Positions 28,856 through 53,907 of a stretch of DNA of 64,000 nucleotides are shown here, one piece after another. The notes under the pieces are model-generated. The model was not told the DNA's origin and made no database searches. It was given only the letters and a program-made list of their open reading frames with translations. The stretch is from the sequence record MW822008.1. One strand, 5' to 3'. Positions within the stretch are counted from its first letter, which is position 1. Every line of letters starts with the position of its first letter. The translations under genes and the position numbers were made by a program.

Positions 28856-31800
28856 ATGTATATCGATGCTTATATGGAACGTAAACGTACTGGTGATATT
28901 TTGCACGTAGCAGAACGTAAAAACGGTAAACGTATTCTACGTCAGTTGGACCCAGTATATGAATATTATGTTGAATCTCCTACTGGTGAACACAAAACAA
29001 TTTATGGAACCAACGCAAAGCATTTGGAGTTTGAAACTCAATCACAGATGAATAAAAGCGTTGAGCAACATAAAAATGAAGGTCTACGTATTTTTGAAAG
29101 TGATTGCAACATTACCTTCAAAACGTTGGCTAGAGAATACATGGGTAAAGGTTCGCCGGATTTGAACGTGGCATTTTTCGATATCGAAACCGACTTCCAT
29201 AAGAAGTTTGGTTATGCTCCACCATCAGATCCATTCAACCGTGTAACTGCAATTTCTCTATATCAATCATGGACTGGTAAGGATTATGTACTGACTTTGC
29301 CACCAACTGATATGGAAATGTACGAAGCACAAGATATTGTTCGTCAGTTAAACGAAGAAACTAACGACCCTAACAGTACTGTCATCCTTTATACGGATGA
29401 GAAAGAAATGTTTATGGAGTTCTTTAGTCTAATCGATGACTCTGATGTAATTTCAGGTTGGAACAGTGAATTCTTTGATATTCCATATATGGTCAACCGT
29501 ACCAAGAAAATCTTCAACGAAGCAACTACTGCTCGTTGGTGCTTGTGGAATAAAAAACCAAATGCTCGTGAAGCTGATAACTTTGGTAAAACTGTAGTAA
29601 CGTATGATCTTATTGGTCGCGTACACTTAGACTATCTTGCTCTTTATAAGAAACATGCTGGTCAAGTTGAACAGTCGTACAAACTAGATTATATTGCTGA
29701 AAAAGTAACTAAAGAAAACAAAGTATCCTATGAAGGTTCATTGGATAAACTATACCGTGAAGATTATATTACATTCTTGCGTTATTCTAAGCAGGATAGT
29801 ATTCTTCTAAAGAAAATTGATGCTAAATGTGACTTTATCAACCTGCATAACCGTCTTGCTCATAAAGAATGTGTACTAATTAGTACTACAATGGGTTCGG
29901 TTGCACTAATCGACACTGCTATCATCAACCTTGCTCACAGTCGCGGTGAAGTTGTTTTTAACAAAGCACCGAAAGATGATATTGAGTTAGATCCAGAGAT
30001 GGAGTACTATGGTGAAGAAGGTGATGAAGAAGATGAGAAAATCAGTGCAAAAGCTGCTGGTGCATGGGTTCAAGATCCAGTTCTTGGCCTTGTTAGCGAT
30101 TTGGGATGTACAGACTTTAACTCATTGTATCCAACTGTACTACGTACACTTGGCATGAGTACTGAATGTATTCTTGGACAACTTCGTCAAGACTACACTG
30201 ATGCATATCTTGCTGCTAAAGTACAAGAGCAAAAAGCTAAATCCAAATCTAAAGCGTTTGAACCTGATTGGACCGCTGCATGGCATGGTTTATTTGCTGC
30301 TGTAGAATTTACAATGGTTCATGAAAAATCTGACAAAACTTTGATTGTTGATTTAGAAGATGGTAGTTCGTTCAATGCAACTGGTAAAGAATTGTATGAT
30401 ATTATCTTTGCTGAAGACAGTACTATTGTACTAAGTGCTAACGGAACACTTTTTGATAAGTCTAAGTATGGTGTAATTCCAGATATTCTTACTCAATGGT
30501 ATTCTGAGCGTAAAGCACAACAAAAAATGGTAATCGACTACAAACACATGTACAGTGATGGGTGGGAATTCAATGGTTCTGAGAAGGTTGAACCTTTGCT
30601 ATCTAACTACACAAGTGGTACAATGTTCCGTACAAACTTACATGACAATGATCCTGTTTACCTATTACGTATTGCTATTGGTAAAGGTCAATGGGAAGAA
30701 GTTGCAAAACTCATTGTGGAAAATGGTTTAGTACTGAAAGATGGTCGTATTTTCTGTGCAACGGAAGATAAGAATTACTTCAAACAGCAAAGTGCATTCT
30801 GGAAACAGAACCAGCAAATTCGTAAGATTCTTCTAAACAGTCTATATGGTGCACTATTGAACAAAGGTTCACGTTTCTTTGATAAACGTTTAGGTCAGTC
30901 CGTTACCTTAACTGGTCGTTCTATGACTAAACATATGGCAAGCCGTATCAATGAAATCACTACTGGCGTTTATAATCACCAAGGTGGCTCTGTGATTTAC
31001 GGTGATACTGACTCCGTTTACTTCAGTGTAACTCATTACCTGAAAGAACAAGGTATTCCATATAATCTTTCGAAAGAAGAAATCGTTGACATGTATATCA
31101 AAATTGGTGATGAAGTTGGTGAATCATTCCCTTCATTCATGAACGAAATGTTCAATACTGGTATTGAGAAAGGTAAGATTGTTGGTGCAGACCTAGAGAT
31201 GGTCGGTTCCCGTGGTCTATTCCTGAAGAAAAAGCGTTATGCAATTCTCAAGTACTGGGAAGATGGTTTCCGTAAAGATGTTGATGGAAAGCCTGGTGAA
31301 ATTAAAGCGATGGGTCTTGAAATTAAACGTTCAGATACGCCAAAATACATCCAGAACTTCCTAGAAGAGACTCTAATTGCATTGCTGGTGGGTGAGTCTG
31401 AAGCTCAACTTAAACAGCGTGTACGTGACTTTAAAGAGGTATTTAAAGACATGCCTGTACACGAAAAGGGTTCACCGAAAACTGTTAAGAACTATACCAA
31501 CTTAGAAGCAGAATATGAAGTTTCTGGTAAATGTAAAGTTGGTCACGTATTAGCAGGTATTCAATGGAACCGTCTACGTGAAGTATATGATGACAAAACT
31601 GTACCTGAAGTAACTGACGGTACAAAAGTAATTGTATGTAACTTAAAAGATAACCCGATGGGTATCAAAGCAGTAGGTTACCCAATTGACTGTGTGGAAT
31701 ATCTACCTGAATGGTTCTTAGAACTACCATTTGATACAGAGAAAATGGAAGAAATAGTTCTAACTAAAAAATTAGAAAACATTTTTGGTATTCTGGATAT

Positions 31801-31861
31801 GGATATTGGTATTCATGAGAAAAGCACAGCAGCCGTTAATAACGGATTCTTCACCTGGTAA
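28856..31861 (+). CDS. gp43: Family B DNA polymerase (gp43-like)
   Basis: ExoI FDIET, ExoII GWNSEFFDIPY, DFNSLYP, KILLNSLYG, YGDTDS. Confidence 0.97.
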   Translation: MYIDAYMERKRTGDILHVAERKNGKRILRQLDPVYEYYVESPTGEHKTIYGTNAKHLEFETQSQMNKSVEQHKNEGLRIFESDCNITFKTLAREYMGKGSPDLNVAFFDIETDFHKKFGYAPPSDPFNRVTAISLYQSWTGKDYVLTLPPTDMEMYEAQDIVRQLNEETNDPNSTVILYTDEKEMFMEFFSLIDDSDVISGWNSEFFDIPYMVNRTKKIFNEATTARWCLWNKKPNAREADNFGKTVVTYDLIGRVHLDYLALYKKHAGQVEQSYKLDYIAEKVTKENKVSYEGSLDKLYREDYITFLRYSKQDSILLKKIDAKCDFINLHNRLAHKECVLISTTMGSVALIDTAIINLAHSRGEVVFNKAPKDDIELDPEMEYYGEEGDEEDEKISAKAAGAWVQDPVLGLVSDLGCTDFNSLYPTVLRTLGMSTECILGQLRQDYTDAYLAAKVQEQKAKSKSKAFEPDWTAAWHGLFAAVEFTMVHEKSDKTLIVDLEDGSSFNATGKELYDIIFAEDSTIVLSANGTLFDKSKYGVIPDILTQWYSERKAQQKMVIDYKHMYSDGWEFNGSEKVEPLLSNYTSGTMFRTNLHDNDPVYLLRIAIGKGQWEEVAKLIVENGLVLKDGRIFCATEDKNYFKQQSAFWKQNQQIRKILLNSLYGALLNKGSRFFDKRLGQSVTLTGRSMTKHMASRINEITTGVYNHQGGSVIYGDTDSVYFSVTHYLKEQGIPYNLSKEEIVDMYIKIGDEVGESFPSFMNEMFNTGIEKGKIVGADLEMVGSRGLFLKKKRYAILKYWEDGFRKDVDGKPGEIKAMGLEIKRSDTPKYIQNFLEETLIALLVGESEAQLKQRVRDFKEVFKDMPVHEKGSPKTVKNYTNLEAEYEVSGKCKVGHVLAGIQWNRLREVYDDKTVPEVTDGTKVIVCNLKDNPMGIKAVGYPIDCVEYLPEWFLELPFDTEKMEEIVLTKKLENIFGILDMDIGIHEKSTAAVNNGFFTW

Positions 31862-35918: not shown

Positions 35919-41250
<5,332 letters not shown>

Positions 41251-44082: not shown

Positions 44083-44901
44083 ATGACAAAATTAGATGAG
44101 TTCCTATCAAACGTATCAGTACTAGACACCGAAACAACTGGTGTCGAAAGTGAAGATGATATTATTGAATTTAGTATTTCATATCCTCACGATGCACATG
44201 AGAATATTGATACTATTGATAACTACACTTTGCGTTATAAACCACTAAAAGATATACCACCAGAAGCAAGTGCTGTGCATTTTATCAGTACTGAAGATGT
44301 AGCAAACTGCATTGGTTATAAAGATGACTTAGAAAACATTGACGCACTAATGGGGTGTCGTAATTATTTTATTGGACACAACGTTCAATTTGACCGCCGA
44401 ATGATGGTAGATAACGAATATAAATATCGTAACTCAGTTTCGCAGTACTTGCTCGATGAAGATAAATGGATTTGTACCCTTCGTTTAGCTAAGAAGATGT
44501 TTGCAGAAGACACTGAATTCAAAAACTTAACTCTAAGTTATTTGTGGTATAAATTTGGTTGCTATCGTGATGTACATCGTGCAGTCAATGCTCACGCAGC
44601 AAAAGATGACGTGTTTATGTGTTATCAAGTTCTAATCAAATTGTTTGAAGTTGCGATTGAACGTGGACATATTGACCCTAATGGTGACATTGGTGAACAA
44701 ATCGTAACATTCTGTAATACACCAATGCGTTATAAATTCATGCCATTTGGTAAACACAAAGGTGAACCAATGGAAACTGTTCCATTGAACTATATTGAAT
44801 GGATGATTACTAACAGTGATATCCTTGATGCAAGTAACCCAAACTGTGATAAAGATTTAGTATATACATTTGAGTACGAATATAATACTCGAACTAATTA
44901 A
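44083..44901 (+). CDS. DEDDh 3'-5' exonuclease (ExoX-like) with C-terminal MPFGKHKG module
   Basis: LDTETTG, GHNVQFD, HAAKDD, MPFGKHKG. Confidence 0.88.
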   Translation: MTKLDEFLSNVSVLDTETTGVESEDDIIEFSISYPHDAHENIDTIDNYTLRYKPLKDIPPEASAVHFISTEDVANCIGYKDDLENIDALMGCRNYFIGHNVQFDRRMMVDNEYKYRNSVSQYLLDEDKWICTLRLAKKMFAEDTEFKNLTLSYLWYKFGCYRDVHRAVNAHAAKDDVFMCYQVLIKLFEVAIERGHIDPNGDIGEQIVTFCNTPMRYKFMPFGKHKGEPMETVPLNYIEWMITNSDILDASNPNCDKDLVYTFEYEYNTRTN

Positions 44902-47395: not shown

Positions 47396-48241
47396 GTGTT
47401 AGATTTCAGTAATATTAAAGCTAAGTCAGTAGACGAAAACGATAAACCAACCCAGCATACATTTTCTATTGCTGAATTTCTAAAACATATTGACCGTGCA
47501 GATTACAAATACTATAATGACATGACCGAAGATGAGCGTAAGGAATTTACGCCTTATACAGTACTTCGTTGGGTAAGTTCACTTGATGACTCACTTCAAG
47601 TAACTTTCCCTAGTAGTAAAGTGGAAAACGTATTTGGTAAGTGGAAAGCTGGTGGCAAAGAAGCACTCACTGAACTTGTCAAAGAACTCAATAGTACTGG
47701 TGTTAATGTAACATCAGTTACTAAGTACTGTCACAGTGACTATGATTGGCGTATCAAGTTTGCCGTACAAAGCAATGATGATGCTAACAAGTTGATTGCA
47801 GCAATGACTGAATTTAGTATTGCTGGTGGACAGATCATCTCATTGGTTGACAGTGACGTTGTACGTTATCAGTTGATTATGTTGAATGATATGGTTAATG
47901 ATGGGTTCTGGGATATGAAAGAACACCCTGAACTTGTATATCAACTACTATGTTCTGTTCATGATATGTTGGGTGGTAAGGAATTGCCACGAAACTGGTT
48001 AAACTTTTCCAAGAGTTTTAAGCGTGCTAATAATGAATTATTTGAACTCATTAAAAGTACACAGCCAGATTCAATCGCAACTCAAATGAACGAAGATGAA
48101 TATAAAATTGTTTTGTTGCAATATAACAAAAAAACATTCGAGTCTTTCCTTGAAGACATAGGTTTACAAGAGAAAGAAATGAAATCAATGATGAAATTAT
48201 TTAAAGAAGAATGTAAGAAATATGGCAAAGAAATCAAGTAG
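47396..48241 (+). CDS. Possible clamp-loader small subunit (gp62-like) with internal insertion
   Basis: YYNDMTEDERKEFTPYTVLRWVSS and NDGFWDMKEHPELVYQLL recall gp62-like proteins. Confidence 0.4.
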   Translation: MLDFSNIKAKSVDENDKPTQHTFSIAEFLKHIDRADYKYYNDMTEDERKEFTPYTVLRWVSSLDDSLQVTFPSSKVENVFGKWKAGGKEALTELVKELNSTGVNVTSVTKYCHSDYDWRIKFAVQSNDDANKLIAAMTEFSIAGGQIISLVDSDVVRYQLIMLNDMVNDGFWDMKEHPELVYQLLCSVHDMLGGKELPRNWLNFSKSFKRANNELFELIKSTQPDSIATQMNEDEYKIVLLQYNKKTFESFLEDIGLQEKEMKSMMKLFKEECKKYGKEIK

Positions 48242-48932
48242 TCCCGTATACAAATGTAAGTTCTGTGATAAAGAATTTAAACGCGAAGACACAGTTAACA
48301 CACATAAGTGTGTTAAACGTGACCGCTACGAAGATCGTGATAGCCGCCCCATGAGGGAGGCTTTTCGCATTTATATGCAATTCATGGAGTTAAACCATTT
48401 CCCTTTCAAGAAGGGTGTTGAACCATTAATGGCTTTTATAAAATCAAAGTACTTTAGTGATTTTTATGATTTTGCAATTTATTATTTGAACAACCGTGAT
48501 ATTTTAGATATTGATGGTTTTGTGAAAAGTCTAATTGTAAGAAACCGTCCTATTATGGAATGGAGTACTTATAAAGCAAAGGATGAATGGATATTAGATT
48601 GTATTCGTTCTGAATCTCCCAATGCTGCGGTTTCCCGTAGTGTTGTTGCGATGGTGGAATGGGGTCAGAATCTGAACTTGGAGTGGAATAAGTTTTTTTC
48701 CAATGTGAGTTCTGCCCGTGCAATTGCATGGATTGAGAGTGGTAAGATTTCACCTTGGATTATCTGGTTAGCACCAAAAGAAAGTACTAATAAGTTTTTC
48801 AAGAATCTCTCTAACTCTGAAATCGAGTATATACTTAAATACATTGATCCTAGTTACTTTGAGGTTAAAACTATAAAGTACAAAAAGGAATGTGATGAAA
48901 TAAAAAGTATGCTACGTGAGGCTGGATTATGA
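48222..48932 (+). CDS. Zinc-finger hypothetical protein
   Basis: YKCKFCDKEFKREDTVNTHKC; GKISPW. Confidence 0.7.
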   Translation: MAKKSSSPVYKCKFCDKEFKREDTVNTHKCVKRDRYEDRDSRPMREAFRIYMQFMELNHFPFKKGVEPLMAFIKSKYFSDFYDFAIYYLNNRDILDIDGFVKSLIVRNRPIMEWSTYKAKDEWILDCIRSESPNAAVSRSVVAMVEWGQNLNLEWNKFFSNVSSARAIAWIESGKISPWIIWLAPKESTNKFFKNLSNSEIEYILKYIDPSYFEVKTIKYKKECDEIKSMLREAGL

Positions 48933-49258
48933 ATGGAAAAAGTATATATAATAAAATACCAGAAGGGTATGTACCTGTGCCTAAAGCAGATAAATCTAAA
49001 TCTTTATCATTGCTTAGACAGGGTTCTATAACTGAAATTACACTTGATGGTAAAACCTTTCAGGTGCACGATCCTGTTCGTGTAGAAAAAATTATCAGTA
49101 TGGTTGAAAGACATGAGGAAAGATTCTTTGGTCTAAGTCAAGAGTTGTCAAAGACCAAACAAAAGTGTACAATGTTAGAAAATCAGGTAACCAAATTATC
49201 TAACACTGTAAACAAATTGCAGGAGCAAATCAAAAATGCAGGATTCGACAAATTCTAA
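48929..49258 (+). CDS. Coiled-coil hypothetical protein
   Basis: ATGA overlap with upstream stop. Confidence 0.65.
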   Translation: MNGKSIYNKIPEGYVPVPKADKSKSLSLLRQGSITEITLDGKTFQVHDPVRVEKIISMVERHEERFFGLSQELSKTKQKCTMLENQVTKLSNTVNKLQEQIKNAGFDKF

Positions 49259-49874
49259 TTCGTACCGTAAAGCACGAACAGATATCGACATTGACTTCAA
49301 AGATAGTAAGTCAGTGATTGCACAGCTTCCTTGTGTGCGAAGTACAGAAAAAATTACGGAGGATGGTTTAATCCCCCATAACAGTGGTGTTCATTTTGAT
49401 AATATACCAATTGACCCTATCACTGGTTTAGCCAGCATACAATATAAAGAAGCCGAACGCTTGGGATATCAAAAGGTAGATATCCTGTCACAATCGGCTT
49501 ACCAGTATGTTCGTGATAGAGCACATTTAAAAGAACTAATGAATCAGGAACCTAATTGGGATCTTCTGTTAGAACCAGAAATAGTTGAACATCTTTCACA
49601 GATTAAAAAACACGTTACATTATTAAATGTGTGGAAACCTAAATCCATTGATGAACTTGCAATGTTTATTGCAATGATTCGTCCTGGAAAAAGGCAGTGC
49701 CAAAGTATGAATACATGGAGTGAAGTTGAATCCACTATATGGGATTACAGTACTATTGGCACAGACCAAGCAGGAAATAAGTTACGATATTTCAAAAAGC
49801 CACATGCTTATGCATACAGCTTAATGATTGTAGTTCAACTTAACGCTTTAGTTGAACATCTTACTTCTTCTTAA
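49236..49874 (+). CDS. Minimal DNA polymerase III alpha (DnaE)-like protein
   Basis: TDIDID, HNSGV, QKVDIL, LAMFIAMIRPG, FKKPHAYAY match DnaE palm/finger motifs. Confidence 0.8.
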   Translation: MQDSTNSNSYRKARTDIDIDFKDSKSVIAQLPCVRSTEKITEDGLIPHNSGVHFDNIPIDPITGLASIQYKEAERLGYQKVDILSQSAYQYVRDRAHLKELMNQEPNWDLLLEPEIVEHLSQIKKHVTLLNVWKPKSIDELAMFIAMIRPGKRQCQSMNTWSEVESTIWDYSTIGTDQAGNKLRYFKKPHAYAYSLMIVVQLNALVEHLTSS

Positions 49875-50214
49875 GAGCCACATTACGACGCTTTATGCGT
49901 TTTTGTGGCAAATCACTTAAAGAAACTACTGGACCACAAACGAAATTCACCGCAGGGGTATCGAATCTCTGTGTGTAAGGTTCAAATTTCTCCATCTCTT
50001 CTTGGAAGAATAGACAGACTGGAATTGACCTGTTGCTTTGCCACCACCAATCATGTGCTATACCCAACAATTCATCTTGCATTGGTTCATCCATATCATC
50101 AAAGCAGTAAAGAGTAGTATACTGTTTACTTTTTATCTTGATAATACCAATGAAAGTTTTACCATCACACTGAACTACCGTGATAAATGGTGGAATAGTA
50201 TTATATTGATTCAT
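49861..50214 (-). CDS. Hypothetical protein
   Basis: ORF with late motif at 50252-50258 (minus); WWWQSNRSIP. Confidence 0.65.
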   Translation of the reverse strand: MNQYNTIPPFITVVQCDGKTFIGIIKIKSKQYTTLYCFDDMDEPMQDELLGIAHDWWWQSNRSIPVCLFFQEEMEKFEPYTQRFDTPAVNFVCGPVVSLSDLPQKRIKRRNVALKKK

Positions 50215-51304: not shown

Positions 51305-52360
51305 ATGAACGCTGTACAAAACATCATGGCACAAATCATGAATGACCCAGTACCAGGAATTGGTATGTGGACACATCACAATTGTCCTGCTTGTGTGTTC
51401 CGTGGTCATTCACGCCCCGATACTAAAAATCGCGGCAATCATATGTTTAACGCAGATGGTTCTGTTTCTTATAACTGTTTTAACTGTAGTCTAAAAACTG
51501 GGTGGCAACCTGGAAAATATATGAGCAAAGATATGGAGTCTTTGCTCATTTCTTTTGGTGCACAGGATAAGGAAATAGAACTAGCTAAATTTTACATTAA
51601 AGAAATGGTTGATAGTGGAGACTTTGCCGAACAAGAAACTACTGCATCTAAACTATATCAACGTGTAACTGTTCGTGAATTACCACCGAACTCAAAAACA
51701 TTCTGGGAATGGGCATCGTTACCAGAAGAGCAAATACCACAAGAATTTATTAGTGTTCTGAATCATGTGAATGAGCGAAATCCATATCTATTAGATTTAG
51801 AATTGTATTGGAGTCCAGCTAAAGAACATAAAATGTATGACCGATTTATCATACCATACGTTATGAACGGTAAAATTATCGGATATACTGCTAGACACAA
51901 ACTTAAAGACCCAGGAAGTACCTATCGTTTTATTAATCAGGTCAGTACTAATATTCTATATAATTATGATCTGTTACAAGATGAACGAATTAAAACTATA
52001 TTAGTTTGTGAAGGTCCAATGGATGCAGCACTAATGGGTGGTGTTTCTGCAAATAACTTTAAATTGTCAGCAGTACAAATAGATGTACTTAAAGCTGCAC
52101 AAGAAAAAGGTAAAAAGATTGTTATCGTACCAGACCGTGATAAGGATGGGTTACAAACAATCGAACAAGCACTAGAATATGGATTTAGTGTTTCTTTCCC
52201 AGATTTTGGGGCAGTACGTGTTGGAAGTACTATACGTCACATTAAAGATTTTGACGAAGCATGTGCTAGATTTGGAAGATTATTTTGTTTACAACTGATA
52301 CATGATAGTATAGTTGACGAGCCTTTCTATATTAAAGCACAAACGGATAAGTGGATGTAA
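51305..52360 (+). CDS. gp61: DNA primase (gp61-like)
   Basis: Zn finger CPAC...CFNC; TOPRIM VCEGPMDA and VPDRDKDG. Confidence 0.9.
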   Translation: MNAVQNIMAQIMNDPVPGIGMWTHHNCPACVFRGHSRPDTKNRGNHMFNADGSVSYNCFNCSLKTGWQPGKYMSKDMESLLISFGAQDKEIELAKFYIKEMVDSGDFAEQETTASKLYQRVTVRELPPNSKTFWEWASLPEEQIPQEFISVLNHVNERNPYLLDLELYWSPAKEHKMYDRFIIPYVMNGKIIGYTARHKLKDPGSTYRFINQVSTNILYNYDLLQDERIKTILVCEGPMDAALMGGVSANNFKLSAVQIDVLKAAQEKGKKIVIVPDRDKDGLQTIEQALEYGFSVSFPDFGAVRVGSTIRHIKDFDEACARFGRLFCLQLIHDSIVDEPFYIKAQTDKWM

Positions 52361-52386: not shown

Positions 52387-53907
52387 ATGATTCAAAGCAC
52401 AGTGGACGTCAAACAGTATGGGATTAATGCACAACAATACTTACTATCCCAAGTTTTCAGTAATCCAGATTTATTTGTACGTTGTAAAAATATTCTAAAG
52501 CCAGAATATTTTGATAAAACATTTCATGAAAGTATTCAGTACGTTCATGATTATGCAGCAAAATATAGTTCATCCCCTACACTGAAAGATATCGAAGTGA
52601 AAGGTGGTTATCAGTATGATCATTATGAAGTACAAGAACTTCATAAACAGGCAGTACTGGATACCTGTAGTGAGTTTTGCCGTCACAAAGCTCTAGCTCT
52701 AGCAGTAGAGAAAGGTATGGAATTAGTACATCAGAAAAAATATGGTGGCATCGAAGAACTCATTCGTGAAGCTATGTTAGTATCTGTACAGAATGAGTTG
52801 GGTCTTGATATCTTTGAAAATCCAGAAGATACCATTCGTTCATTGAGCACTATGCAAGGTTCATTCAAGAGTGGATGGGAAACCCTTGACTATAAACTAT
52901 TCGGTGGTTTTGGTCGCCGTGAACTTGAAATCTTTGCAGCAGCGTCTGGTGGTGGTAAATCAGTAGTACTACAGAACTTAGCAGTTAACTTTGCTAAGGC
53001 TGGTATGAATGGTGCATACATTTCACTAGAACTAGCAGAAGAGTTGGTAGCCGTTCGTATCTATGGTATGATGACTGAATCTAAGCTAAGTAACGTTAAG
53101 AACGAAGCTGAAAAGATTGGTCTACGAGTTCAAATGGAAGGCAAGGATAGTGGTATATTGCGTATTAAACGTTTACCAGAATCCGTAACAACCACTGATG
53201 ATATTGAAAGTTATCTTCGTGAATTGCAAATTAAAATGGAAGTCAAATTAGATTATGTTTGTGTGGACTACCTTGACCTATTAACATCAAATCGTCTTGG
53301 TCCTAATGATAAATCTAATACATTTACAAAAGATAAATTTGTATCTGAAGAATTGCGTGCACTAGCAACCAAAATGGATTTGACAGTCTTCACTGCGTCA
53401 CAGTTTAACCGTAGTGGTATGGATGAAGATAAGAAAAGTCAAAGTCAGATTGCTGGTGGTATTTCTAAAATCTATACTGCGGATAACGTTATCTACATTG
53501 AAGCACGTAAAGAAACTGGCGAACTTTGGTTTGACTTCCAGAAAACACGTAACAGTAGTGCAGTTGGTTCACGTTTGCGTATGTCATATGATATCGATTC
53601 ACTTCGTGTACTAGACCACGCAACCACAATCCAACAATTCGAAACTGATGGGTCAGGATTCCGTCACAGTGGCATCTCTAAGGTCGGCGGTGGTAACATG
53701 GCAATGCCACCAAGTACAATGCAAACACTGCGTCATACGCTTTCTGGTGCTCCTAAACCAAGCACTACACCGAGTGTTGAAAGCGTAACACTAAATACAG
53801 ATAGTGATCCAATCACTTCTACACAAACTGAATCCCAGCCTCAACAGCCTCACATTGGTACTGATCGTGTAAATGCAATGAAGCAATGGTTAAATCAAAG
53901 GAAATAA
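52387..53907 (+). CDS. gp41: Replicative DnaB-like helicase (gp41-like)
   Basis: AAASGGGKS, ISLEL, VDYLDL, TASQFNR, KTRNS. Confidence 0.93.
   Translation: MIQSTVDVKQYGINAQQYLLSQVFSNPDLFVRCKNILKPEYFDKTFHESIQYVHDYAAKYSSSPTLKDIEVKGGYQYDHYEVQELHKQAVLDTCSEFCRHKALALAVEKGMELVHQKKYGGIEELIREAMLVSVQNELGLDIFENPEDTIRSLSTMQGSFKSGWETLDYKLFGGFGRRELEIFAAASGGGKSVVLQNLAVNFAKAGMNGAYISLELAEELVAVRIYGMMTESKLSNVKNEAEKIGLRVQMEGKDSGILRIKRLPESVTTTDDIESYLRELQIKMEVKLDYVCVDYLDLLTSNRLGPNDKSNTFTKDKFVSEELRALATKMDLTVFTASQFNRSGMDEDKKSQSQIAGGISKIYTADNVIYIEARKETGELWFDFQKTRNSSAVGSRLRMSYDIDSLRVLDHATTIQQFETDGSGFRHSGISKVGGGNMAMPPSTMQTLRHTLSGAPKPSTTPSVESVTLNTDSDPITSTQTESQPQQPHIGTDRVNAMKQWLNQRK

Follow-up and report, generated by a model that had tools for sequence, protein, structure and literature searches.

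The C-terminal unit of a predicted two-chain, minimal DnaE-type DNA polymerase in the jumbo phage BF17

In jumbo phages of group 2.2, a phage-specific, minimal form of the alpha subunit of DNA polymerase III (Pol III alpha) has been described that accompanies a DNA polymerase of family B (PolB; Iyer, Anantharaman, Krishnan, Burroughs, & Aravind, 2021; Viruses 13:63, PMC7824862). The enzyme is split into an N-terminal protein that binds nucleoside triphosphates and a C-terminal protein that binds Mg2+ and DNA, the two being encoded by distant genes; according to the same authors, it may act together with PolB when one of the strands is made or during repair, and they see in it a model for the ancestral state (Iyer et al., 2021; PMC7824862). 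Earlier genome papers, on the phages CBB and Atu_ph07, had noticed the N-terminal unit only, as a 'truncated' Pol III alpha. Here we consider an open reading frame (ORF) at positions 49236-49874 of a 64,000-nucleotide stretch of sequence record MW822008.1 (hereafter, the window), the product of which is the predicted C-terminal (Mg2+- and DNA-binding) unit of such a split minimal Pol III alpha. The DNA belongs to Escherichia phage BF17, a Rak2/121Q-like jumbo myovirus with a genome of 383 kb, to which it is 100% identical over the 6 kb compared, and a window position equals the BF17 position minus 186000.

The pair of proteins in BF17 is the same entity as the one described by Iyer et al. (2021), with no difference in kind. 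The group 2.2 setting recurs as well, in that the window encodes PolB, a sliding clamp, a gp32-like single-stranded DNA-binding protein, UvsW, a primase, and a DnaB-like helicase. The split mini-DnaE is already published (2021) and annotated, in RefSeq as well as in PHROGs; homologues of the C-terminal unit (C-unit) carry the RefSeq label 'DNA polymerase' in phages 121Q, PBECO4, GAP32, CBB, and Atu_ph07. What the present analysis adds is modest, namely, a mapping of residues onto the Escherichia coli enzyme, two natural fusions of the units, zinc-finger and antisense-ORF neighbours, and counts over 160 loci. The fusions and the deeply conserved neighbours should ease the checking of a two-subunit model.

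The C-unit and its likeness to DnaE

The C-unit gene (49236..49874, + strand) opens with ATG, closes with TAA, and codes for a protein of 212 amino acids (aa), which matches phrog_11778, 'DNA polymerase', over its full length (E=2e-106). As the original prediction, made from the letters of this DNA, had read it, the ORF holds five motifs in the order in which DnaE has them, all on the + strand. These are DIDID (residues 16-20, 49281..49295, with D16, D18, and D20), HNSGV (residues 48-52, 49377..49391), a palm motif of DnaE beginning at E. coli H511, KVDIL (residues 80-84, 49473..49487), the counterpart of E. coli K553-F-D555, IAMIRPG (residues 145-151, 49668..49688), the RPG motif of the finger domain, which aligns to DnaE, and FKKPHAYAY (residues 186-194, 49791..49817), which includes the steric-gate residue H190.

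Taken as a single sequence, the C-unit finds nothing in the PDB by phmmer and nothing in NCBIfam; its sole Pfam match, to the Pol III finger domain PF17657, reaches 13.7 bits and stays below the cut-off of 22, and Pfam PF07733 is not matched. The family is large (789 homologues, and 520 representatives at 50% identity), and a profile of 30 of its sequences retrieves DnaE chains only from the PDB, in four collinear pieces with E about 0.9. When this profile is aligned by hhalign to two full-length, plasmid-borne DnaE genes found by tblastn, from L. fermentum and Aneurinibacillus, the HxxGV, KxDxL, and RPG motifs fall in collinear register, with E=0.0036 and 0.014, respectively. The AlphaFold model of the C-unit is confident (predicted local distance difference test, pLDDT, 92.1; predicted template modelling score, pTM, 0.78), and the best 16 Foldseek matches of this model in the PDB are all DnaE, the top 8 with a probability of 1.00 and the best with E=1.6e-3, at query-normalised template modelling scores of 0.38-0.52. 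The comparison with DnaE that had been proposed as a check comes out in favour of DnaE, by hhalign as well as by AlphaFold. We regard the C-unit as a homologue of DnaE because the profile, hhalign, fold, and natural-fusion evidence combine to this end, no single line being sufficient; the assignment is one of sequence and of predicted structure.

Residue equivalences were taken from printed alignments only, and the E. coli structure 2hnh_A was reached by way of P0182, a metagenomic fusion of the two units discussed below. In the alignment of P0182 onto 2hnh_A, D16, D18, and D20 correspond to E. coli D401, D403, and D405. The hhalign comparison with the Aneurinibacillus DnaE, chained to E. coli numbering, places H48 at H511, and that with the L. 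fermentum DnaE, chained likewise, places K80 and D82 at K553 and D555. The stretch F186...H190 corresponds to F756...H760 (S759/H760), where the profile alignment to the motif in 5lew is weak but collinear. In all C-family polymerases D401, D403, and D555 hold the catalytic metals, and the D405 position is occupied by Asp in DnaE1-3 and by Asn in PolC (PMC3919608); ribonucleotides are kept out by H760, the steric gate (PMC8485763). The original prediction had counted a DxD pair and the KxDxL aspartate as the family C triad. All three equivalents are indeed present, but the pair had been set off by one: D16 and D18 align to D401 and D403 and are therefore the catalytic pair, rather than D18 and D20. 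Since D20, the D405 equivalent, is an invariant Asp, the phage enzyme is of the DnaE kind, not of the PolC kind.

The mapped catalytic and motif residues are unchanged in all 30 sequences of the family alignment and in 80/80 homologues from IMG/VR, which range from 37 to 83% in identity. Because the pattern used to fetch these 80 loci included K80, D82, R149, P150, and K152, the IMG/VR counts for those five positions are biased; R149, P150, and K152 are also unchanged in the 30-sequence alignment. D16, D18, D20, H48, G51, K187, H190, Y194, and N203 lay outside the fetch pattern, and D16, D18, D20, H48, G51, and H190 are each found in 80/80. The ratio of nonsynonymous to synonymous substitution rates (dN/dS) of the C-unit gene against phage 121Q is 0.043, next to 0.037 for the primase. 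The gene is under strong purifying selection and is not decaying. The compressed catalytic core of DnaE type that had been proposed for this ORF is borne out, with the equivalents of the aspartate triad, D16, D18, and D82, invariant.

Much of DnaE is absent from this chain, which has only 15 residues ahead of the DxD strand and 18 after FKKPHAYAY. The thumb is gone: D20 and H48 are spaced by 27 residues, compared to about 105 between D405 and H511 in E. coli, and the AlphaFold model has only one helix and a beta-hairpin there. The fingers are mostly gone as well, with 36 residues from RPG to FKKxH, compared to about 117 from RPG to FNKSH in E. coli. No Pfam match in the C-unit corresponds to a PHP, helix-hairpin-helix (HhH), or OB domain or to a beta-clamp motif, and the chain ends 18 residues past its last motif, so the original prediction was right to leave no room for PHP, clamp-binding, or OB parts; the C-terminal domain of DnaE is likewise missing. 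A further element that the C-unit lacks is the triphosphate-binding G-[GS] loop, which in E. coli is R362-G363-S364.

The partner protein and the readings of the pair

That loop resides on a second protein of 172 aa, the N-terminal unit (N-unit). Its gene, at BF17 267051-267566, lies outside the window, 17 kb after the last position, and is 31.2 kb downstream of the C-unit gene. The earlier view of the C-unit as a self-contained nucleotidyltransferase does not fit this arrangement. In the near-identical phage fEgEco12, the N-unit is g421, annotated as 'DNA-pol3-alpha domain-containing protein'. It passes Pfam PF07733 (model positions 15-95, E=5.8e-9) and aligns to M. tuberculosis DnaE1 331-406, and the C-unit profile begins at position 413, so that the end of one unit and the start of the other are nearly adjacent positions of DnaE, within a few residues. 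The GRGSS loop of the N-unit is invariant, R140-G141-S142 being retained in 80/80. Both units occur in BF17, and in the phage collection their counts by genus are equal (Escherichia 34/34, Pseudomonas 11/11, Salmonella 8/8, and Erwinia 8/8). Their genes stay apart. Among 160 metagenomic loci, 80 around the C-unit gene and 80 around the N-unit gene, the N-unit lies within 10 kb of the C-unit gene in 0/80, and the C-unit within 3 kb of the N-unit gene in 0/80.

Two proteins in which nature has joined the units, both of them database sequences as found and not artificial constructs, tie the pair to DnaE. P0182 (375 aa, metagenomic) consists of phrog_11127 (residues 8-180) followed by phrog_11778 (190-374). 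Its PF07733 match runs over the junction of the units (E=4.8e-16), and its match to E. coli DnaE extends across the same junction, over 319-417 (E=3.5e-6). AlphaFold renders P0182 as a single compact unit (pLDDT 88.3, pTM 0.85), in which a linker of about 10 residues has low confidence, and the best 19 Foldseek matches of this model in the PDB are all DnaE or PolC, with the lowest E=6e-8. The second natural fusion, P0261 (336 aa, metagenomic), also passes PF07733. Its gene overlaps by 4 nt the end of a gene for a 552-aa protein with a Replicase-family (PF03090) domain and a helix-turn-helix; the pair occupies L015:1516-4181 of an 8-kb contig (JGI 3300080032, Ga0669126_0033275) that resembles a small mobile element more than a jumbo phage. 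This translational coupling to PF03090 is a second, independent tie of the mini-polymerase to a replication protein.

With these elements in hand, we read the gene as probably coding for one of the two polypeptides, the C-terminal one, of a minimal polymerase core of DnaE type (family C). As predicted from the two sequences, a composite active site of DnaE type is divided between two conserved proteins, with the residues that contact the metals, the triphosphate, and the sugar all kept. The C-unit carries the three Mg2+-binding aspartates, the fourth, DnaE-specific aspartate, the counterpart of K553, and a pair of short finger helices, one with RPG and the other with FKKxH and its steric-gate His; the N-unit contains the preceding, Pol-beta-type part of the palm with the triphosphate-binding GRGS loop. 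Association of the two into a heterodimer would create one active site that adds deoxynucleoside triphosphates (dNTPs) to a 3' end. Because the thumb, the clamp contact, and the additional DNA-binding domains (HhH and OB) are absent, such an enzyme would be expected to act distributively and over short stretches. It may serve as an accessory polymerase of the replisome beside PolB, carrying out the first extension of primase-made primers or the filling of short gaps, a role suggested by the company of the two genes, which is primase and helicase for the C-unit and the clamp loader for the N-unit. We hold this best guess at the role, whether in primer extension or in the filling of short gaps, with low confidence.

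Several considerations weigh against a two-chain polymerase. The match of the C-unit to DnaE, when that unit is taken by its sequence only, is weak. We infer the association of the two units from the fusions, their co-occurrence, and the model of a fused homologue. An enzyme stripped of its thumb and of most of its fingers might no longer copy a template. Polymerases of the T4-type PolB kind extend RNA primers themselves, so that the need for a polymerase dedicated to that task is not obvious. Alishewanella phage Slickus01, a non-jumbo phage of 141 kb, has an intact C-unit (L014:2884-3495), and its N-unit was not located within the 6.5 kb examined; a 131-aa ORF directly upstream of the C-unit was considered as the N-unit and rejected (hhalign E=0.51). 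Finally, the literature yielded no experimental paper on either unit.

A more ambitious version of the two-chain polymerase is a replisome with two polymerases, in which the split mini-DnaE would be a dedicated short-patch or primer-extension enzyme that hands over to PolB, perhaps together with the CCHC zinc-finger protein and the small proteins encoded beside each half, and in which activity would be gated by the joining of subunits from the primase-helicase and clamp-loader modules. Analogous hand-overs take place from DnaE to PolC in Firmicutes and from Pol alpha to Pol delta in eukaryotes. We consider this scheme rather unlikely.

An improbable alternative is that the two pieces together form a nucleotidyltransferase of a non-templated or non-replicative kind, such as a terminal transferase, an enzyme for the synthesis of a signalling nucleotide, or one that modifies DNA or RNA ends or acts in counter-defence. 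The disappearance of all thumb, HhH, OB, and clamp-binding parts would suit such an enzyme, and many transferases of this kind belong to the Pol-beta fold, Cid1, CdnE, and GLD-2 being among the noise-level fold matches of the fusion model. However, the significant fold matches are to C-family polymerases only, no variation is seen in the finger motifs peculiar to DnaE, among them the His by which the sugar of an arriving dNTP is read, and both genes sit in replisome modules across three distant phage clades and the 160 metagenomic loci. As for counter-defence, PADLOC, and with it the models of defence systems, yields no match for either half, the neighbours, or the fusion. The earlier suggestion of anti-defence or of DNA or RNA modification is accordingly disfavoured, the finger motifs of DnaE and the steric-gate His being kept.

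Still less credible is a stand-alone, stripped nucleotidyltransferase, in which the 212-aa protein would bind nucleotide and metal unaided. It is true that the metal-binding aspartates and the steric-gate His are all on the C-unit chain and that this chain folds confidently by itself in the model described above. Nevertheless, this chain starts only at the DxD strand, and the part of the Pol-beta fold that bears the triphosphate-binding G-[GS] loop is on the 172-aa partner instead; this partner occurs in the same phage genera with equal record counts and is fused to the C-unit in two natural proteins; and the Foldseek E value of the fusion model against DnaE is about four orders of magnitude better than that of the half alone. 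The weakest proposal, an inactive relic of full-length DnaE that is decaying or is retained structurally as a mere scaffold of the replisome, can appeal to the extreme reduction in size and to the presence of a complete PolB able to carry out all synthesis, but it is scarcely tenable given a dN/dS about as low as that of the primase, catalytic and nucleotide-contacting residues that are all invariant down to 37% identity in every sampled lineage, and hundreds of diverged members of constant length. The invariant aspartates and the dN/dS, on which the original prediction had been ready to stand or fall, likewise dispose of a pseudogene.

Genomic surroundings

The C-unit gene lies in a string that reads, in order, UvsW, ORF 46896, ORF 47396, the zinc-finger gene, the C-unit gene, a convergent ORF, an approximately 300-aa 'virion structural protein', primase, and helicase, and the order around the C-unit gene is common to Pseudomonas phage Paride (PA5oct-like) and Agrobacterium phage Atu_ph07. 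Neighbours were counted over those of the 80 IMG/VR loci that had enough flank; a UvsW homologue is found near the C-unit gene in 52/52. The usual upstream neighbour (71/73 loci), often abutting the C-unit gene, is a CCHC zinc-finger protein of 236 aa (48222..48932, + strand), in which C12, C15, H28, and C30 are invariant in three phage clades. Its profile matches C2H2 fingers (E=2.8e-4), and the rest of the protein is devoid of recognisable similarity; it might bind DNA as a partner or act as another subunit. Between the zinc-finger and C-unit genes of BF17 there is a 109-aa coiled-coil ORF (48929..49258, + strand; phrog_14909, 'virion structural protein'), which is present in 2/77 loci and missing in Paride and Atu_ph07. 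The original prediction had seen here an operon with a zinc-finger protein and a gp62-like protein. The co-oriented string and its zinc finger hold, but the likeness of the 48929 ORF to gp62, the small subunit of the T4 clamp loader, does not, Pfam and NCBIfam giving coiled-coil noise only.

On the other side, a convergent 117-aa ORF (49861..50214, - strand; phrog_11637) overlaps the 3' end of the C-unit gene by 14 nt. The same arrangement is seen in Paride, in Atu_ph07, and in 77/78 loci, and the dN/dS of this ORF is 0.045. The DnaG-type (Toprim) primase gene (51305..52360, + strand; phrog_47, E=9e-29) starts 1.43 kb downstream of the C-unit gene, in agreement with the distance of about 1.4 kb given earlier, and a primase homologue follows the C-unit gene in 57/61 loci, the median distance being 1254 nt. 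Next comes the gene annotated as a DnaB/gp41-like replicative helicase (52387..53907, + strand; 46/47 loci).

The PolB gene noted at 28856 is complete (28856..31861, + strand, 1001 aa; PF03104 1.3e-22, PF00136 3.4e-21), and its product is presumed to be the main replicase. A stand-alone DnaQ/epsilon-like 3'-5' exonuclease (44083..44901, + strand; PF00929 RNase_T 1.2e-14) is encoded 4.3 kb upstream, within the same replication module, and its 121Q homologue is annotated as 'DNA polymerase exonuclease subunit'. As pure inference, this exonuclease could proofread for the mini-polymerase, which itself has neither a PHP nor an exonuclease part. The label 'sliding-clamp-loader small subunit', attached in the GenBank record of phage Turkey3 to ORF 47396-48241 (+ strand, 281 aa), finds no support in Pfam or in a PDB sequence search and is rejected; this ORF has shorter homologues in Paride and Atu_ph07.

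Scans for sigma-70 promoters and terminators between 44000 and 52500 did not rise above shuffled expectation, and the T4-type late-promoter octamer is not enriched, with none near the C-unit gene. Because these scans gave no signal, co-transcription rests solely on the overlapping or abutting ORFs of the same strand.

The surroundings of the N-unit gene are equally stereotyped. In fEgEco12 and in metagenomic loci the string reads N-unit, a 114-aa ORF, a GroES-like gene, and clamp loader; in fEgEco12 it occupies L003:31050-33612, about 81-84 kb on the scale of the window and outside it. The 114-aa ORF (phrog_14844) stands beside the N-unit gene in 75/77 loci and the GroES-like gene in 74/76, and both may belong to the same machine. 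In Slickus01, the C-unit is surrounded by the clamp-loader module and the primase/helicase module, which adjoin one another.

Some further observations concern gene structure and annotation. The RefSeq coding sequence (CDS) of the C-unit of Atu_ph07, gp074 (L007:5001-5561), begins 66 nt downstream of the start of the tblastn match, and the annotated protein (164 aa) is devoid of DxDxD, its start codon having probably been mis-set. The large terminase subunit gene of BF17 appears as three successive, overlapping ORFs in different frames (37525-39827, + strand), and fEgEco12 is annotated likewise. In Bacillus phage vB_BceM_WH1, a DnaE of full-length type is annotated as three gapped CDS (gp235-237, L008:2960-7158), which suggests intervening elements; owing to this division it was left out of the DnaE comparators.

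Comparison with known polymerases

Bacterial DnaE, as represented by the E. coli (2hnh), T. aquaticus (2hpi), and M. tuberculosis DnaE1 (5lew) enzymes, has the same palm, the same D401, D403, D555, D405, and K553 positions, and the same HxxGV, RPG, and FNKSH motifs in the same order, but it comprises about 1160 residues in one chain as opposed to about 380 in the two chains of the phage pair. PolC of Firmicutes (3f2b) has the C-family fold in common with the pair, and the fusion model matches it with E=1.6e-4; it differs in having Asn at the D405 position, where the phage C-unit has the invariant Asp D20.

A different route to a divided DnaE is found in cyanobacteria, where protein splicing of intein-bearing halves, encoded by two distant genes, yields the enzyme at full length. 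The phage system has the two distant genes in common with the cyanobacterial one, but its units carry no surplus sequence that might form an intein. A split intein was considered for the phage pair and rejected, since neither unit has sequence to spare and the linker of the natural fusion is only about 10 residues long.

Compared to these systems, the phage pair would be the smallest known version of the core of the bacterial replicative polymerase, with a predicted active site shared by two polypeptides, and the phages that possess it also carry a PolB of archaeal/eukaryotic type. If active, the split mini-DnaE would define the minimal parts of a C-family polymerase and would bear on the origin of such enzymes.

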